In this document: positions 2,880 to 8,494 of the stretch, in pieces | Position numbering within the stretch: the first letter of the stretch is position 1 | Layout: each line of letters opens with the position of its first letter | Origin: Vitrella brassicaformis CCMP3155 | Taxonomy: Eukaryota > Protista > Chromerida | Assembly: GCA_001179505.1 (NCBI GenBank) | Contig: CDMY01000542.1 | Coordinates: 186,001 to 250,000, forward strand | DNA length: 64,000 bases | Direction of reading: 5' to 3' | Translations under genes and position numbers: made by a program | The notes under the pieces: generated by a model | Database searches by the model: none | What the model saw: only the letters and a program-made list of their open reading frames with translations | Told to the model about the DNA's origin: nothing

Positions 2880-3944
2880 TCACTTCTTTTTGTGCTTTTT
2901 CTGCGCCTTCTGCGGTCGGCTCGCCTCCATGTCCAGGATCGCATCGAGCGATTCCTTACTCGGCTCGCTCGACTTGGGGCACAGGTTGGCAAAGCTGAGC
3001 GTGCAAGGGTGCTCGTCGATGTCGAAATCGCAGACAAAGTCGGCAAGAGTCACGGATTCTTCGCCTTCGTCGGCAATAGAGCGGATGGTGCCGGTGTAGT
3101 ACTTGTCAAACAGAGACTCGCCCTGATCACGGTTGCACCGCCGTACCTTGCACACCCCCTTTTTCTTCTGAGCTTGTTCTTCTGGGGTGAGGCAGAATTT
3201 GAATGATGCGATTTCTTTGTCGTCGCAGGCCCAGTTGCAAGATGGCGCACATTTGGCACTGACGGGCAGGGAGCATTGCACGTCTCGCTTGTCGGCAGGG
3301 TCAAGTTTGGGCTTGAAGAGGCAGTGGGGGCTCTCGCTGTGAGGTTCGATGGGAGACAGACAGAACAGATACGTGACCAATGGATACATTCAATGGATCG
3401 TACACAAAAGCGTCCTCATCACATGTCGGTAAGACATCACACCTGTGGGGTTCGAAGATCTTGCCGGGGAAGAGCTCCAGCTTCTCCCTGCAACGCATCC
3501 ATTCACACAAAGAATACCCAGGCATGCACGATGTCTCTTTCACATGTCTCTCTCATATGTGTGTGAGTACGAGTTGCAGAGAGCGGCGACGCATTCGAGA
3601 GGCTCCGGGAGACCAATGTCAATGTCCGTCGGCTCGTCGGCGTACACGCAATGCTCATGCGCAGCTATCTCGGCGGCCGCATCGCACCCAGGCAGCTGCA
3701 TACACAAAACAGACACATGCAAGCAAGAAGGCATATAGAAGGCATATCAAGAAAACAGGCGACGGCTCATTAATGACACAACCTGGCATTCGGGGTTGAA
3801 CTTTGCCAGAATGGGGTTGACATCTGGCTCCGCTAGCTGCGGTGCGTCATGACACTTGCTGTCATCATGATGATGGAGCTGCTCGGCGGCAGCACCCTTC
3901 ACGATGAGCACCAGGACGGAAAATGCCACATACAGCATTGTCAT
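2880..3944 (-). CDS. Secreted cysteine-rich protein of unknown function (4 exons, ~265 aa)
   Basis: Signal-peptide-like MTMLYVAFSVLVLIVKGAAA|EQ. GT-AG introns join in phase: ..NPECQ|LPGCD..ALCNS|EKLELFPGKIFEPHS|ESPHCLF..KKHKKK*. Confidence 0.7.
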
Positions 3945-4340
3945 GTGCCGGCAGCCTTGTTTGCAATGGGCGGCCAAGTTGGCGAACTGCAGCGGTTTCT
4001 GGGAGCACCCTAGGCGGCCTGGCGGCCAAGTCCCCTGTTGGTCTGTCCAACATGAAAACACGCACCCTAACATGCAACCCGGACACGCAACACGCAGCAC
4101 GCAGAGGGCAGACGCAGCAAACAGGAGGATGTGCAATGCGCTGCGAACGACGGCAACATACAGGCAGGCACACAACGTCGCACACACGCCAACCCAGCAG
4201 CAGCTTGAAGGCGGCGTGCATGCGTGCATCCTGCACCATGACTCCATACGTAGATACCGCCCATCCCCAGGTGGCGAACTGAAGTTGCGAGCTTAGCCGA
4301 GCAAAGGGGAAGCCACAGATCGTCGTCCCCTTCCCAGATC

Positions 4341-6327
4341 ATGCTGCCTATCCGCACGCCTGTCGGATTGTCAGGTCTCACAGCTGCAGCTGCCCTCCGG
4401 AGAGCTCCGGTTGCTGTCCAGCGAAGATGGCACCACCCTGATCTAACAAAGGCAAGGAGGCAAGGAATGAACCTGGGGAATGAATGAATGCACGACAGAT
4501 GAGCGAGCTGACACACCTGATCTGCTGTGCTGTGCGAATGCTGTCCTGTTGATACACTTCAGCTCAAGGGGTGGAAGAGTGTCGAGAAGGAATCAAGCAT
4601 CCCACACACAGCTGCTGAGAGGGAAGCACAGCATGCACTCAAGATGGGGCTGCCAGGGGCGTCGAGCATCACCGACAAGTCCATTCCCACCTTCTCGAGA
4701 GGGGAGCTGCCTCACTTTGCCGGCATCCTGACGTTCATGAAGGCGCCTTATGTCGAGGACATCACGCAGGTGGGCAAGTACGATGCTGCCGTGGTCGGTG
4801 CGCCGTTTGACGGCGGAACTACGTACAGATCTGGGGCAAGGTGAGCCTCAATCAAGACAGATCTGCCATTACTGAATGTGACGCGATTGATGTGTTACTT
4901 TGGTGGTGGTTGTCCTGCAGATTTGGGCCGCAGGGCATCAGGAAGATATCTGCCTTGTACTCACCATACAACTTCGGTATCAAGGGCACAGGCACACACA
5001 CACACACACACACACACACGCTCACTGCTCAGTCCATGCACTTTTTTGTTGTCTGCCTGCTTTCCGTTACTTTCTTATCAGAGTTGGGTGTCGATCTGCG
5101 CGAGCAAATGTCACTGTGCGACTGTGGCGACATATTCAAGTAAGACAGGCTGCTGAGAGAGAAAGCGAAACGAGAGCTGTGTAAGGCTCTGTGTTCCTCC
5201 TTGTGTCAGCATCCCTGCCAACATCGGTACTATACATCAGTCACGCAATCTAGACACGCCATCTGTCCTTTCTCTGCTCTCATTCGCACACGTGTGTGTA
5301 TGTGCAGAGAAGACCTTCGACCAGATCACCAATGCGGTCGGGCACATCGCGCAGAGCGGCGCCATGCCGGTAGTGCTGGGTGGCGATCACTCGATAGGCT
5401 TCCCGACTGTGCGTGGGGTGGCGGCATGCACAAGCAAAAAGATCGGCATCATCCACATCGACAGACACCTCGACATATCGGTCAGCCGGCCGTCAGTAAT
5501 GACCACACCCTCACACAGGATGCCGAGAGTGCTCATATCCGTGATATGCGCTGTCATTAATGTCATCAGGAGAAGGATCACGATGAGAGAATGCACACCA
5601 CGCCATTGTAAGATCAAGACACGACAACACGAGAGAGCACGTATGCCTCTATGTGTGTGCTTGGCTTGTATCAGTTTCCACGCGACGAACATCCCAAATG
5701 TGCCCGCCAAGAATCTGGTGCAAGTGGGCATCGGGGGCTGGCTCGTCGACCGCAGTGCCTTCCCTGTCATACGCGAGCGCCGCCCCACCATCTTCACCAT
5801 ACAAGACATTCAGGAATACGGACCTGAAAAGGTATCCAGACGCACAAACATCGATCGATCATCCGTGCGTGTGTGTGTGTGTGTGTCGATGTGTTTGTGG
5901 GTCAGGTGATGGAGATGGCGTTGGACAGGGCGTGGGATGGAGTGGATGCCGTCTGGCTGTCATACGACATCGACTCCATTGAGGCCGCATTCGTGCCCGG
6001 CACTGGCACTCCCGAACCGGGCGGACTGCTGCCCAGAGAAGCACTCAAAATGGTGAGTGAGGGGAGAGATGTCATGACAACAGACACGAGCACTCGGTGC
6101 TCACGCTGTGTGTGTGTGTGTGTGTGTGTGTCGATTAGGTGAGTATGGCTGCGCGGGAGGGCATATGCGGCATGGAGATTGTGGAGGTTTCCCCGCCTTA
6201 CGACCATGCGGACATCACCTCGTTGATGGCGCTGCGCATCGTGGTGGAGGTGCTGGGCAGCCTGGTGTCCTGCGGCAAGATGGGTGCACACAAACACATA
6301 CTGGACAGGGAATTCAAACCATTCTGA
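4341..6327 (+). CDS. Ureohydrolase (arginase/agmatinase fold) of the guanidine-hydrolase-like subgroup, with a probable mitochondrial presequence
   Basis: Metal ligands GGDHS, DRHLD and YDIDS are present. IPTFSRGELPHFAG, ELGVDLREQ, DERMHTTPFFHATN, PGTGTPEPGG and VEVSPPYD resemble bacterial GdmH-type enzymes (from recall). Multi-exon; stop at 6325-6327. Confidence 0.93.
5835..5890. repeat. Example of an intronic (TG)n microsatellite typical of introns across the window
   Basis: (TG)n/(CA)n, (GACA)n and (GGAT)n tracts recur in many introns of the conserved genes. Confidence 0.9.
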
Positions 6328-6753
6328 CACATGTAATGACACGTGTGCATGCGGCTGAGCGATGATCATACGGTGGCTACGTGGAAGCAAGGCCGCTTTT
6401 TCGGCCCTTCCCTGCCAATAAGGACAGCTGTCTCTGTATTTTGAGACGAGGGTTGTATGAGTCTGTTGGCCTTTGTTGATTACGTGGGTGTGTCGTCAGC
6501 TGTTATGGAGTTTGCCCTTTGCCCTTAATGGACCACGCTCACTTCACTTGTCTATGATCATGGATGTGCTCTGATGCCTCCCTGATGTGTGTCCTTCACA
6601 CACATGCACGTCAAAGGAAGGCGCCACCGAGACTCGGTATCCACCGAGACTCGGTATTCACATGAATCGAATGTCTGTACAAGGGATCATCAATACGACA
6701 CATACTCCCTCCCTATATCGACACATCCCTCACATGCAATATCTGCACACAAG

Positions 6754-8494
6754 TCACGTTGTCGTTTTGACCCCCGCCAGATTGCTGGCATACTCAGCTA
6801 CCTGGTTGCATGCTGGGCACCGCAGCGCCTTCCCGCGCCTGCGTTTGCGGCACATGTCCTCCCAGCATGACTCACAGACACACTGCTGCATACAGGGGAA
6901 GAAACACACTGTGGGCAGCCGATCCAGGCACACCACACACGTGCCCTTCCGCCTCTCCGCCTCCCCCAGCAGCTGGCTCAAGCTACGCTGCTTCTCGATT
7001 ATCTCCTCTTTGAAGCCTTCGATGGCAGCAGAATCGCCGCTCCGAAACAGCAGGGTGCCAACACTCAGTCTGATGCGTGCACACACAAAGGGAGGCATAT
7101 GCATGGCTGAATCGGGCCGTGTCTCTTTGTGTGTTGTACCTGTCGTCAGCCACTTGCTCGATCTCATCGCGTTTCTTCTGTAGCGACACAACCAAGGTCT
7201 TCTGCAGGGCCGTCTGGTCCGCTTGTGCAGAAAGCGCATCTATCAGGCCGCACACACAGTGACAGACGGGGAGTAAGGCACACATGCACACACATCCAGG
7301 GAGTACTCACCGGCGGGTCTCGGTCATGAGTTTGGCAACCGTCTGCCGCTGCTGCTGCTCCGCTGGCGACGATGACACGCTCAACCCCCTGCATGTGCCA
7401 TGCACATTTGTCGGCGTGTCCTTGTGAGGTTGGAGTGGACTCACCGTGTATCGTCGTATCCGTCCCTTGGCATGGCGACAGCCGCATCGTAGAGCTTCTG
7501 CAGCCGAGTGGCTTCATCGCGGATGCGTGAGCAGAAACGATCTACTTCATCTGATGTCGTCGTGGCGATCAACGAGGCACGCGTCAACCTGCAAACGTAC
7601 AATAAGTGGCCAGCACAGTGGCCATTGGTACCCGTCTGAATACCCCTTTTGAATGATCGCACGACAGCACTCCTCATGGTACACGCTGATCGAGGAAGGA
7701 GACACACACGTGCGAACGGCCAGCGAGATGTGTGTGCGACCATGACGGCGTAGCGTACGCAAGTATGGTATCAACGGCCTCCTCCGCCAATGAAGAGATG
7801 TCGAGGTCATCGTTGACCACCATGAGGGCGCACAAAGGCTCAACACAGCCGCACTGAACCGCCTGCCGCACCTGAATAGACACAGACACCCCTTGTGGTT
7901 TCTTGTGTCCTTGATGGATGCGGCACTTGCCTGAGTGGTGTGTCTGGGTGTCCCCTTGTCCGCCGGCGATGGCAGAACTATGACATTCTTGATGGCCGTG
8001 AGAGCCAGCTTCTTGGCGGTCGACAGCACTCGTGCAGCGGCGAGAACCGTCGTCGACGGCCGCTCGCTGTCAGTGGTACAGGCATCTCGCAGAATGTCCA
8101 GCAGAGGCGTCAGCGCCGTGTCAAGGATCCGCCGCCGCGACTCAGGCTGACTTTGGATGATGAAACCCATCGCCACCAAGGCGTGCTCTCGCACCACGCC
8201 GCTAGAGGACGACAAGAGCTCCGTCAAGACGGAAAGGGCCCCAGCTCTGACGACTGCTGTAGGCTGCTCCGCTGCGATGTAGCTGAGGGCCTTTGCCGCC
8301 TCCTGCTGCAGGTCAGGCCGGTCGCGGATCTTGCACAACTTGATAAGCACCGGCACCACACCGGCCTTCACGAGCCGCTGGGTTAGCACCTTCCCATCGA
8401 TGGACAGATATTCGCCCAGCTGCTGTGTGGCGCTGAAGCGGCGGCTGTGGTCGTCCCTATGGAGTGCGTCAACGAGGTCATCTATCAAAGCCAT
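6754..8494 (-). CDS. Armadillo-repeat (importin-alpha-like) protein with C-terminal RING finger, probable E3 ligase
   Basis: ARM-like helices (AGVVPVLIKL..DLQQEAAKALSYIA..GALSVLTELLSS..VREHALVAMGFI) and RING CVVC..PCMQQCVCESC..CPAC. Internal exon boundaries are only partly resolved. Confidence 0.7.

Follow-up and report, generated by a model that had tools for sequence, protein, structure and literature searches.

The window analysed here (64,000 nucleotides of contig CDMY01000542.1 of the chromerid alga Vitrella brassicaformis CCMP3155) contains, at positions 4341-6327 of the forward strand, a ten-exon, nine-intron nuclear gene. Its product of 407 amino acids (aa) is by descent a member of the clade of Ni-dependent guanidine hydrolases (guanidinases) represented by Synechocystis GdmH (Sll1077), but carries replacements at otherwise invariant positions of the predicted substrate pocket. 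These coordinates span the coding region exactly, start ATG and stop codon (TGA) included (Table 1). The gene model was built by reading region 3800-6900, splicing it on GT-AG sites and then comparing it with transcripts. Spliced contigs from four public runs belonging to three studies back every intron with zero differing letters relative to the predicted exons, and the product matches P0389, a complete open reading frame (ORF) of the public MMETSP transcriptome, at 100%. The public gene model P0001 (CEM21713.1, 393 aa) picks a GT donor near 4410 in error, at a cost of 14 residues, whereas the transcripts are spliced from a GC donor at 4452; P0389 is thus the correct product, and P0001 is otherwise the same protein. 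In line with a GC-AG type intron 1, the Vitrella paralog P0002 retains RWHHPDLSKL, and the corresponding RRWHHPDLTK motif of exon 1 is common to bacterial GdmH N-termini. The presequence ahead of this motif lacks acidic residues among its first 33 positions and is probably an organelle-targeting peptide. The GC content of the gene resembles that of its surroundings, and the introns at 4977-5081, 5227-5307, 5832-5905 and 6053-6138 contain (CA)n or (TG)n microsatellites, one kind per intron.

Table 1. Coordinates of the GdmH-clade gene and its parts within the window, with residues or evidence of note.
Feature	Position	Strand	Content or evidence
Full coding region, divergent GdmH-clade ureohydrolase	4341..6327	+	gene model, spliced contigs and identical transcript ORF
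Exon 1	4341..4451	+	Arg/Ala-rich N-terminal presequence, then RRWHHPDLTK
Intron 1, GC-AG type	4452..4562	+	joint 4449/4561 with two ambiguous letters, spliced contigs of X7 and X8
Exon 2	4563..4840	+	GdmH-type N-terminal extension (IPTFSRGELPHFAG); GGTTYR with Thr124 (= Synechocystis Thr97)
Exon 3	4921..4976	+	spliced contigs
Exon 4	5082..5139	+	ELGVDLREQ...; Asn168 codon split over 5138-5139 and 5210
Exon 5, 17-nucleotide microexon (IPANI)	5210..5226	+	letters between the sides of the 5139/5307 joint, 4/4 runs
Exon 6	5308..5480	+	metal ligands in GGDHS (His201) and HIDRHLD (Asp225, His227, Asp229); ends in Ser231 (5478-5480)
Exon 7	5570..5607	+	His235 (5579-5581); catalytic His240 (5594-5596) = N. 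inopinata His222
Exon 8	5675..5831	+	FHATN...GIGGW loop; Leu267 (5742-5744), Asp269 (5748-5750); Gln290
Exon 9	5906..6052	+	SYDID (ligands Asp317, Asp319); PGTGTPEPGG with Thr331 (ACT, 6008-6010)
Exon 10	6139..6327	+	MEIVEV with Glu361 (= N. inopinata Glu344), then C-terminal helix and stop codon

Exon pieces of the gene match the Pfam domain PF00491 Arginase (E 5e-16 to 3e-7) and the superfamily fold was confirmed by structure comparison, while exon-wise NCBIfam and Pfam scans resolved the superfamily level alone. All six metal ligands are present (His201, Asp225, His227, Asp229, Asp317 and Asp319). In a PDB search with the full protein, the guanidinase of Nitrospira inopinata (9FEK) was the best match (E = 1.4e-154, 518 bits), followed by Synechocystis GdmH/Sll1077 (7ESR/7OI1, 507 bits); the next ureohydrolase, a guanidinobutyrase, reached 174 bits and Escherichia coli agmatinase 120 bits. 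A GdmH-type N-terminal extension of about 60 residues (IPTFSRGELPH...) precedes the arginase fold, and the exon encoding it aligns end to end with the solved guanidinases by itself (E = 1e-29 and 4e-27). Furthermore, an AlphaFold2 (AF2) model of the protein (predicted local distance difference test 86.1, predicted template modelling score 0.88) superposes on 9FEK and 7ESR with template modelling (TM) scores of 0.85-0.89 at 61% identity, with metformin hydrolase, proclavaminate amidinohydrolase, guanidinobutyrase and the agmatinase SpeB trailing at 25-33% identity.

UniRef and JGI label the family 'agmatinase', which, together with the Pfam Arginase domain, would make the product an ordinary eukaryotic agmatinase or arginase. 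This is hardly credible. The protein falls below every curated NCBIfam cut-off for the agmatinases (TIGR01230, 165.3 versus 174.3 bits; NF002564, 209.5 versus 302 bits), arginases (TIGR01229, 120.7 versus 227.6 bits) and formimidoylglutamases (TIGR01227, 146.5 versus 229.15 bits), is 28% identical to E. coli SpeB as opposed to 61% to the guanidinases, and possesses both the GdmH-specific N-terminal extension and the DRH motif. Membership in those families is therefore contradicted, although agmatine could still be a substrate. Membership among the metformin and dimethylguanidine hydrolases likewise failed, with 25-29% identity, a retained catalytic His and paralogs located on different contigs.

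These results agree with an earlier, sequence-only reading of the stretch, which had proposed an intron-bearing eukaryotic GdmH homologue rather than an ordinary agmatinase: the bit scores, the spliced transcripts and the 61% identity to solved guanidinases all bear this out, and the protein groups with the GdmH clade, not with ordinary eukaryotic agmatinases. The peptide strings on which that reading relied were all recovered after splicing (GLPGASSITDKSIPTFSRGELPHFAG, HIDRHLD with its DRH, ELGVDLREQ, DERMHT, FHATNIPNVPAKNLVQVGIGGW, PGTGTPEPGG, GARFGP and PFFH), as was IPANIEKTFDQI, which is spread over three exons including the microexon. The GdmH states that it had quoted were correct as well, since 7ESR/7OI1 and 9FEK all read PGTGWPEPGG, GTRFGP, PWFH and DRH. 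Contrary to its suggestion, GARFGP is not a distinguishing change but an ordinary variant, with Ala in 11 of 113 close relatives.

The proposal of altered substrate-pocket residues held, and the changes go further than the Trp to Thr replacement at the guanidine-specificity position, as Q231S, Q267L and P269D had been overlooked. In the 185 columns with a conservation of 95% or more, the window protein has seven private changes (T168N, Q231S, L235H, Q267L, P269D, E290Q and W331T) compared with one in P0002. The 183 other relatives of a 184-row alignment all have Q231, Q267 and P269, where the window protein has Ser, Leu and Asp; these three positions belong to two active-site loops other than that of W331. 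Column 331 is Trp in 182 of the 183, the sole other exception being P0019. The remaining private changes concern column 168 (Thr in 174/184 aligned rows; Asn in the window protein), column 235 (Leu at 95% in an alignment of 182 relatives; His) and column 290, where the invariant Glu of the clade is replaced by Gln. Thr331 occupies the column of Synechocystis Trp305 and N. inopinata Trp313. Retained are Thr124 in GGTTYR (Synechocystis Thr97, N. inopinata Thr105) and the catalytic residues His240 and Glu361, which correspond to N. inopinata His222 and the guanidinium-binding Glu344. Thr97 and Trp305 underlie the specificity of GdmH for guanidine (PMC11410670), and Palatinszky et al. classified sequence centroids as inferred guanidinases if the equivalents of both Thr and Trp were present and as 'inferred not guanidinase' if Trp was missing (PMC11410670). 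By this rule (Thr105 and Trp313) the window protein, with Thr present and Trp absent, is 'inferred not guanidinase'; the supplements of PMC11410670 contain no text on the equivalents of Q231, Q267 or W331. The three loops that carry these pocket changes are the least confident parts of the otherwise confident core of the AF2 model.

Relatives were collected by a word search with a stop-free 250-codon frame comprising exons 5, 6 and 8 as query, as single exons were blind to full-length relatives. More than 4000 relatives were obtained. Among those with a name, P0002 of Vitrella (405 aa) comes closest at 77% identity, together with diatom, brown-algal and Phaeothamnion proteins at about 70-72% and proteins of Alphaproteobacteria. 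When one genome per prokaryotic species was scanned, more than 595 loci emerged, of which the best 80 belong mostly to Rhodobacterales, Rhodospirillales and Hyphomicrobiales and are 67-75% identical to P0002. A metagenome scan for the exact FVPGTGTPEPGG motif, which is blind to Trp replacements other than the motif's own, returned 104 stretches; the 80 of these that were read were all ordinary agmatinase-like proteins with DAH or DTH and at most 40% identical, and none of the 80 belonged to the GdmH clade.

Two trees were calculated, the first from 144 rows under LG+G4 and the second from 55 rows under a quick posterior mean site frequency (PMSF) mixture, rooted with the DRH-type sister subfamilies B and C described below. 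Sll1077 and the N. inopinata protein lie outside both trees and their relation to the window protein comes from the PDB searches; in the second tree, P0237 and P0184 are too poor as stand-ins for the cyanobacterial or Nitrospira types. The window protein and P0002 are sisters in both trees (Shimodaira-Hasegawa-like approximate likelihood ratio test 99-100) and fall within a eukaryotic-algal group (support 81-90). This group forms a clade with a small bacterial group labelled SAR324 (support 100), and that clade is nested among proteobacterial sequences, which supports a derivation of the eukaryotic-algal GdmH clade as a whole by horizontal gene transfer; a horizontal origin, already suspected from the sequence, fits this placement within proteobacterial GdmH.

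The SAR324-labelled group (metagenome-assembled genome L001; P0075, P0082 and P0107) lies closest to the eukaryotic-algal GdmH clade as a whole. The L001 contig looks truly bacterial because its ORFs are dense and intron-free; a guanidine riboswitch was looked for on this contig and not found. In 7 of 8 bacterial loci tested that encode enzymes with the specificity Trp (W-type), a guanidine-I riboswitch precedes the gene by about 3 kb in the same orientation, and the closest bacterial relatives are therefore very probably true guanidinases. At L018, the one locus viewed in detail, the riboswitch is followed by an NMT1-type ATP-binding cassette (ABC) transporter and then by the hydrolase. The proteins of diatoms and brown algae labelled 'agmatinase' (P0003-P0090; Ectocarpus, Cladosiphon, Nemacystus, Phaeothamnion and Entomoneis) also belong to the W-type guanidinase clade, and the agmatinase step in diatom urea-cycle schemes may need a second look.

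V. brassicaformis thus encodes two paralogs. P0002 is the canonical, W-type copy, encoded by ten exons on another contig (L081:6001-7962); it is 77-79% identical to the window protein, and its four signature columns still read W, Q, Q and P. The two genes have six of nine intron positions in common, while three per copy lie at other sites with the coding length unchanged. The duplication hence occurred at the DNA level after intron acquisition, and introns have been gained, lost or moved since. Synonymous sites of the pair are saturated, with a synonymous divergence (dS) of 1.6 by the Nei-Gojobori method (NG86; at least 1.2) and a third-position identity of 51%; the nonsynonymous divergence (dN) is 0.17, giving a pairwise dN/dS of about 0.1, and with dS saturated a maximum-likelihood dN/dS is meaningless for this pair. 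Both copies have long been under purifying selection: the 407-codon frame is intact, and had the window lineage been neutral for that long, its reading frame would have been lost.

The window copy has evolved about twice as fast as its sister. Measured against the consensus of 182 relatives it has 44 private changes compared with 17 in P0002 (chi-square 11.95), and its terminal branch is 0.33 versus 0.16 in the second tree and 0.66 versus 0.28 in the first. This acceleration, together with the loss of residues that are invariant elsewhere, is what would be expected of a duplicate that is losing its function by drift as constraint relaxes. Such drift is nevertheless very unlikely for a gene that has an intact frame, nine correctly spliced introns, transcripts and a dN/dS near 0.1 at saturated dS, and in which none of 129 conserved core columns has changed.

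A truly degenerate relative looks quite different. P0019, a protein of a diatom-like lineage known from metagenomes and metatranscriptomes (five sequences; cluster members P0390-P0393), is 88% identical to normal-looking neighbours; in it, a ligand His (DRN), the two Asp ligands of SxDxD (SYNIGS) and the catalytic His (RMQ) are all missing, and the specificity Trp has become Ser. It looks like a catalytically dead copy and, by analogy with metformin hydrolase, may act as a partner subunit. That such non-catalytic eukaryotic GdmH copies arise, that heteromeric Ni-ureohydrolases composed of diverged paralogs exist (PMC11399263) and that two paralogs occur in one Vitrella genome would also suit a window protein acting mainly as a partner subunit, assembled into hetero-hexamers with the canonical paralog and tuning stability, metal loading or specificity. 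We consider this role, which is drawn by analogy, improbable: unlike the beta subunit of the metformin hydrolase MefH or P0019, the window copy keeps every ligand and catalytic residue and its core columns are unchanged.

An exhaustive search of representative sequences identified subfamilies of the DRH type whose identity to GdmH is about 50% and in which Thr occupies the column of Trp305 (T-type). Subfamily C (P0271-P0388, e.g. P0276; loci L186-L188) is large, uniform at 386 aa and found in Thermomicrobiales/Chloroflexota, with the motifs DRHxDLS, GGWTGS and GTGTPESGG; its genomic context at L186-L188 is not conserved and uninformative. Subfamily B (e.g. P0121, P0404 and P0405) is characterised by DRHIDMA, a His-rich insert after the catalytic His, GGWYGS and GTGTPEPGG. 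One of its genes (L191:4012-8909) is located after an NMT1-type ABC transporter (permease, ATPase and binding protein) and before a NicO-like transporter (weak Pfam match), in a cluster flanked by LysR regulators, whereas at L189 and L190:5738-8194 an NMT1 binding-protein gene alone precedes the hydrolase and no NicO-like gene was called. Subfamily B is probably a Ni enzyme for an imported guanidine-like compound. A guanidine riboswitch was found at none of the four T-type loci of subfamilies B and C tested, as opposed to the 7 of 8 W-type loci. Both subfamilies share DRH, RMH, GGW and Thr at column 331 with the window protein, and C also Ser at 231; they differ from it in being bacterial, about 52% identical and not associated with a guanidine riboswitch at the sampled loci. 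The window protein reached its S231 and T331 states, which are fixed in subfamily C, by convergence from a W-type ancestor.

The distribution of its changes relative to subfamily C is uneven. Whereas none of the 129 columns that are conserved and identical in GdmH and subfamily C is changed in the window protein (1/129 in P0002), seven of the 30 columns that discriminate between the two are (Fisher p = 4.6e-6; 3/30 in P0002). With window-private changes only, the counts are 4/30 discriminating versus 0/129 shared columns (p ~0.001, hypergeometric). This enrichment is suggestive, though no proof, of directed pocket remodelling.

Taken together, we favour by a small margin over even chances the reading that the window gene encodes a competent binuclear-metal ureohydrolase, which arose from an old GdmH duplication within the Vitrella lineage and whose specificity then moved away from free guanidine. 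Neofunctionalisation fits better than decay because of the intact core, the old age, purifying selection, expression and the coordinated replacement of pocket residues. A more specific version, which we put forward tentatively and hold to be somewhat less probable than its opposite, is that this represents the first natural substrate change inside the guanidinase clade, in a eukaryote: a proteobacterial gene was acquired and duplicated, and its pocket was rebuilt (W331T, Q231S, Q267L and P269D) for a substituted guanidine such as methylguanidine or an amino-alkyl guanidine. In the favoured reading, loss of the bulky Trp (W331T) and of Gln (Q231S) would open the closed guanidine cage, the smaller Thr and Ser enlarging the cavity, L267 and the new acidic D269 would occupy the loop position that in arginase holds the distal portion of the substrate, and the changes together could admit an N-substituted guanidine. 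Attack of a metal-activated hydroxide on the guanidinium carbon, the mechanism common to all ureohydrolases, would then release urea and an amine. As elsewhere in the clade, the metal is probably Ni.

As the substituent, we would guess at a small alkyl or amino-alkyl group, as in methylguanidine-type or agmatine-type substrates, and less at a guanidino acid: an alkyl or cationic substituent would suit Leu267 and the newly gained Asp269 better than a carboxylate, no result favours guanidino acids, and an anionic substituent would be disfavoured by Asp269. The case for guanylurea is weak, because the known guanylurea hydrolase belongs to another family.

Alternatively, the protein might still hydrolyse guanidine, with the pocket changes altering kinetics, gating or regulation, for instance in a lower-affinity or differently localised isoenzyme of the canonical paralog. 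Its nested position in the guanidinase clade and the retention of the Thr97 equivalent, the catalytic His, the Glu and all ligands are compatible with such an isoenzyme, as are the millimolar Michaelis constants (Km) of known guanidinases, which indicate loose binding, and the different conformations of the Trp in the two solved enzymes. We regard continued guanidine hydrolysis as unlikely, though as a serious contender, given that this one lineage has jointly changed four residues that do not vary in about 183 relatives, every riboswitch-linked bacterial guanidinase sampled among them, that T-type relatives are not riboswitch-linked and that the literature takes the Trp as required for guanidine specificity (PMC11410670).

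Several points weigh against a retuned substrate range. Trp313 of the N. inopinata enzyme adopts a rotamer different from that of Trp305 and the tunnel stays open, so that the Trp is not a rigid lid. Thr at column 331 is the ancestral state in the wider agmatinase-like family and alone predicts no substrate. The columns discriminating GdmH from subfamily C are inherently more changeable, part of the enrichment would arise under relaxed constraint too, and P0002 shows the same tendency. The pairwise dN/dS is not divisible between the two branches. One argument for a role of the changed residues in specificity is that in rat arginase I, Asn130, Asp183, Thr246 and His141 contact the substrate, and we take Ser231, Leu267, Thr331 and His240 to be their respective counterparts; however, for positions 231, 267 and 331 this mapping onto N130, D183 and T246 comes from motif register, not from coordinates. 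Lastly, the substrate and activity proposed for the window protein, and for its T-type relatives, rest on sequence and not on enzymology.

In the literature searched, no eukaryotic guanidine hydrolase is described and these enzymes are treated as bacterial; a search on urease, arginase and nickel handling in Vitrella found nothing. What is new here is the divergent copy, which descends from within the guanidinase clade and lacks one of its two specificity markers. Guanidine metabolism has been recognised only recently, and the window gene and its canonical sister reveal a bacterial enzyme established in algae (Vitrella, diatoms and brown algae), so that the use of guanidine by eukaryotic phytoplankton can now be tested. 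The divergent copy amounts to a mutagenesis experiment done by nature: the catalytic machinery is untouched, whereas the specificity Trp has been exchanged along with three otherwise invariant residues of the pocket loops. These four residues provide a short list for swaps between the Vitrella paralogs or into Sll1077 that address what confines guanidinases to free guanidine, and could also aid the search for new guanidino-compound hydrolase activities; a substrate change, if true, would itself be a new enzyme activity. Furthermore, the gene illustrates that database labels ('agmatinase') and simple residue rules (Thr and Trp) can conflict with phylogeny.

Among known systems, Sll1077/GdmH (7OI1, 7ESR) shares with the window protein 61% identity (TM scores 0.86/0.89), the extension of about 60 residues, DRH, the six ligands, and Thr97, the catalytic His and the Glu. 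It differs in having Trp305 instead of Thr, Gln instead of Ser after DxHxD, GGWQVP instead of GGWLVD and PWFH instead of PFFH. Unlike the Synechocystis gene, the window gene is nuclear, has nine introns and a presequence, and is not accompanied by an operon, a riboswitch or an adjacent Ni chaperone; the Ni-delivery proteins GhaA/GhaB (HypA/HypB-like) are also absent from comammox guanidinase loci. The N. inopinata guanidinase (9FEK) is equally similar (61% identity), with Thr105, His222, Glu344 and the ligands conserved, in contrast to Trp313, which is not. The metformin and dimethylguanidine hydrolases (MefH/MfmAB and DmgH) resemble GdmH-clade enzymes as Ni-dependent ureohydrolases with N-terminal extensions and set a precedent for a few pocket changes shifting specificity among small guanidines (PMC11399263), but they are only 25-29% identical to the window protein and are obligate alpha/beta heteromers, with the catalytic His of the alpha subunit replaced by Asn. 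The guanidinobutyrase GbuA, the guanidinopropionase GpuA and proclavaminate amidinohydrolase belong to the same superfamily and have GTGTP with Thr at the same column as the window protein; they differ by their low identity (about 28-33%), DAH instead of DRH, the lack of a GdmH-type extension, and an Asn after DxHxD, where the window protein has Ser and GdmH has Gln.

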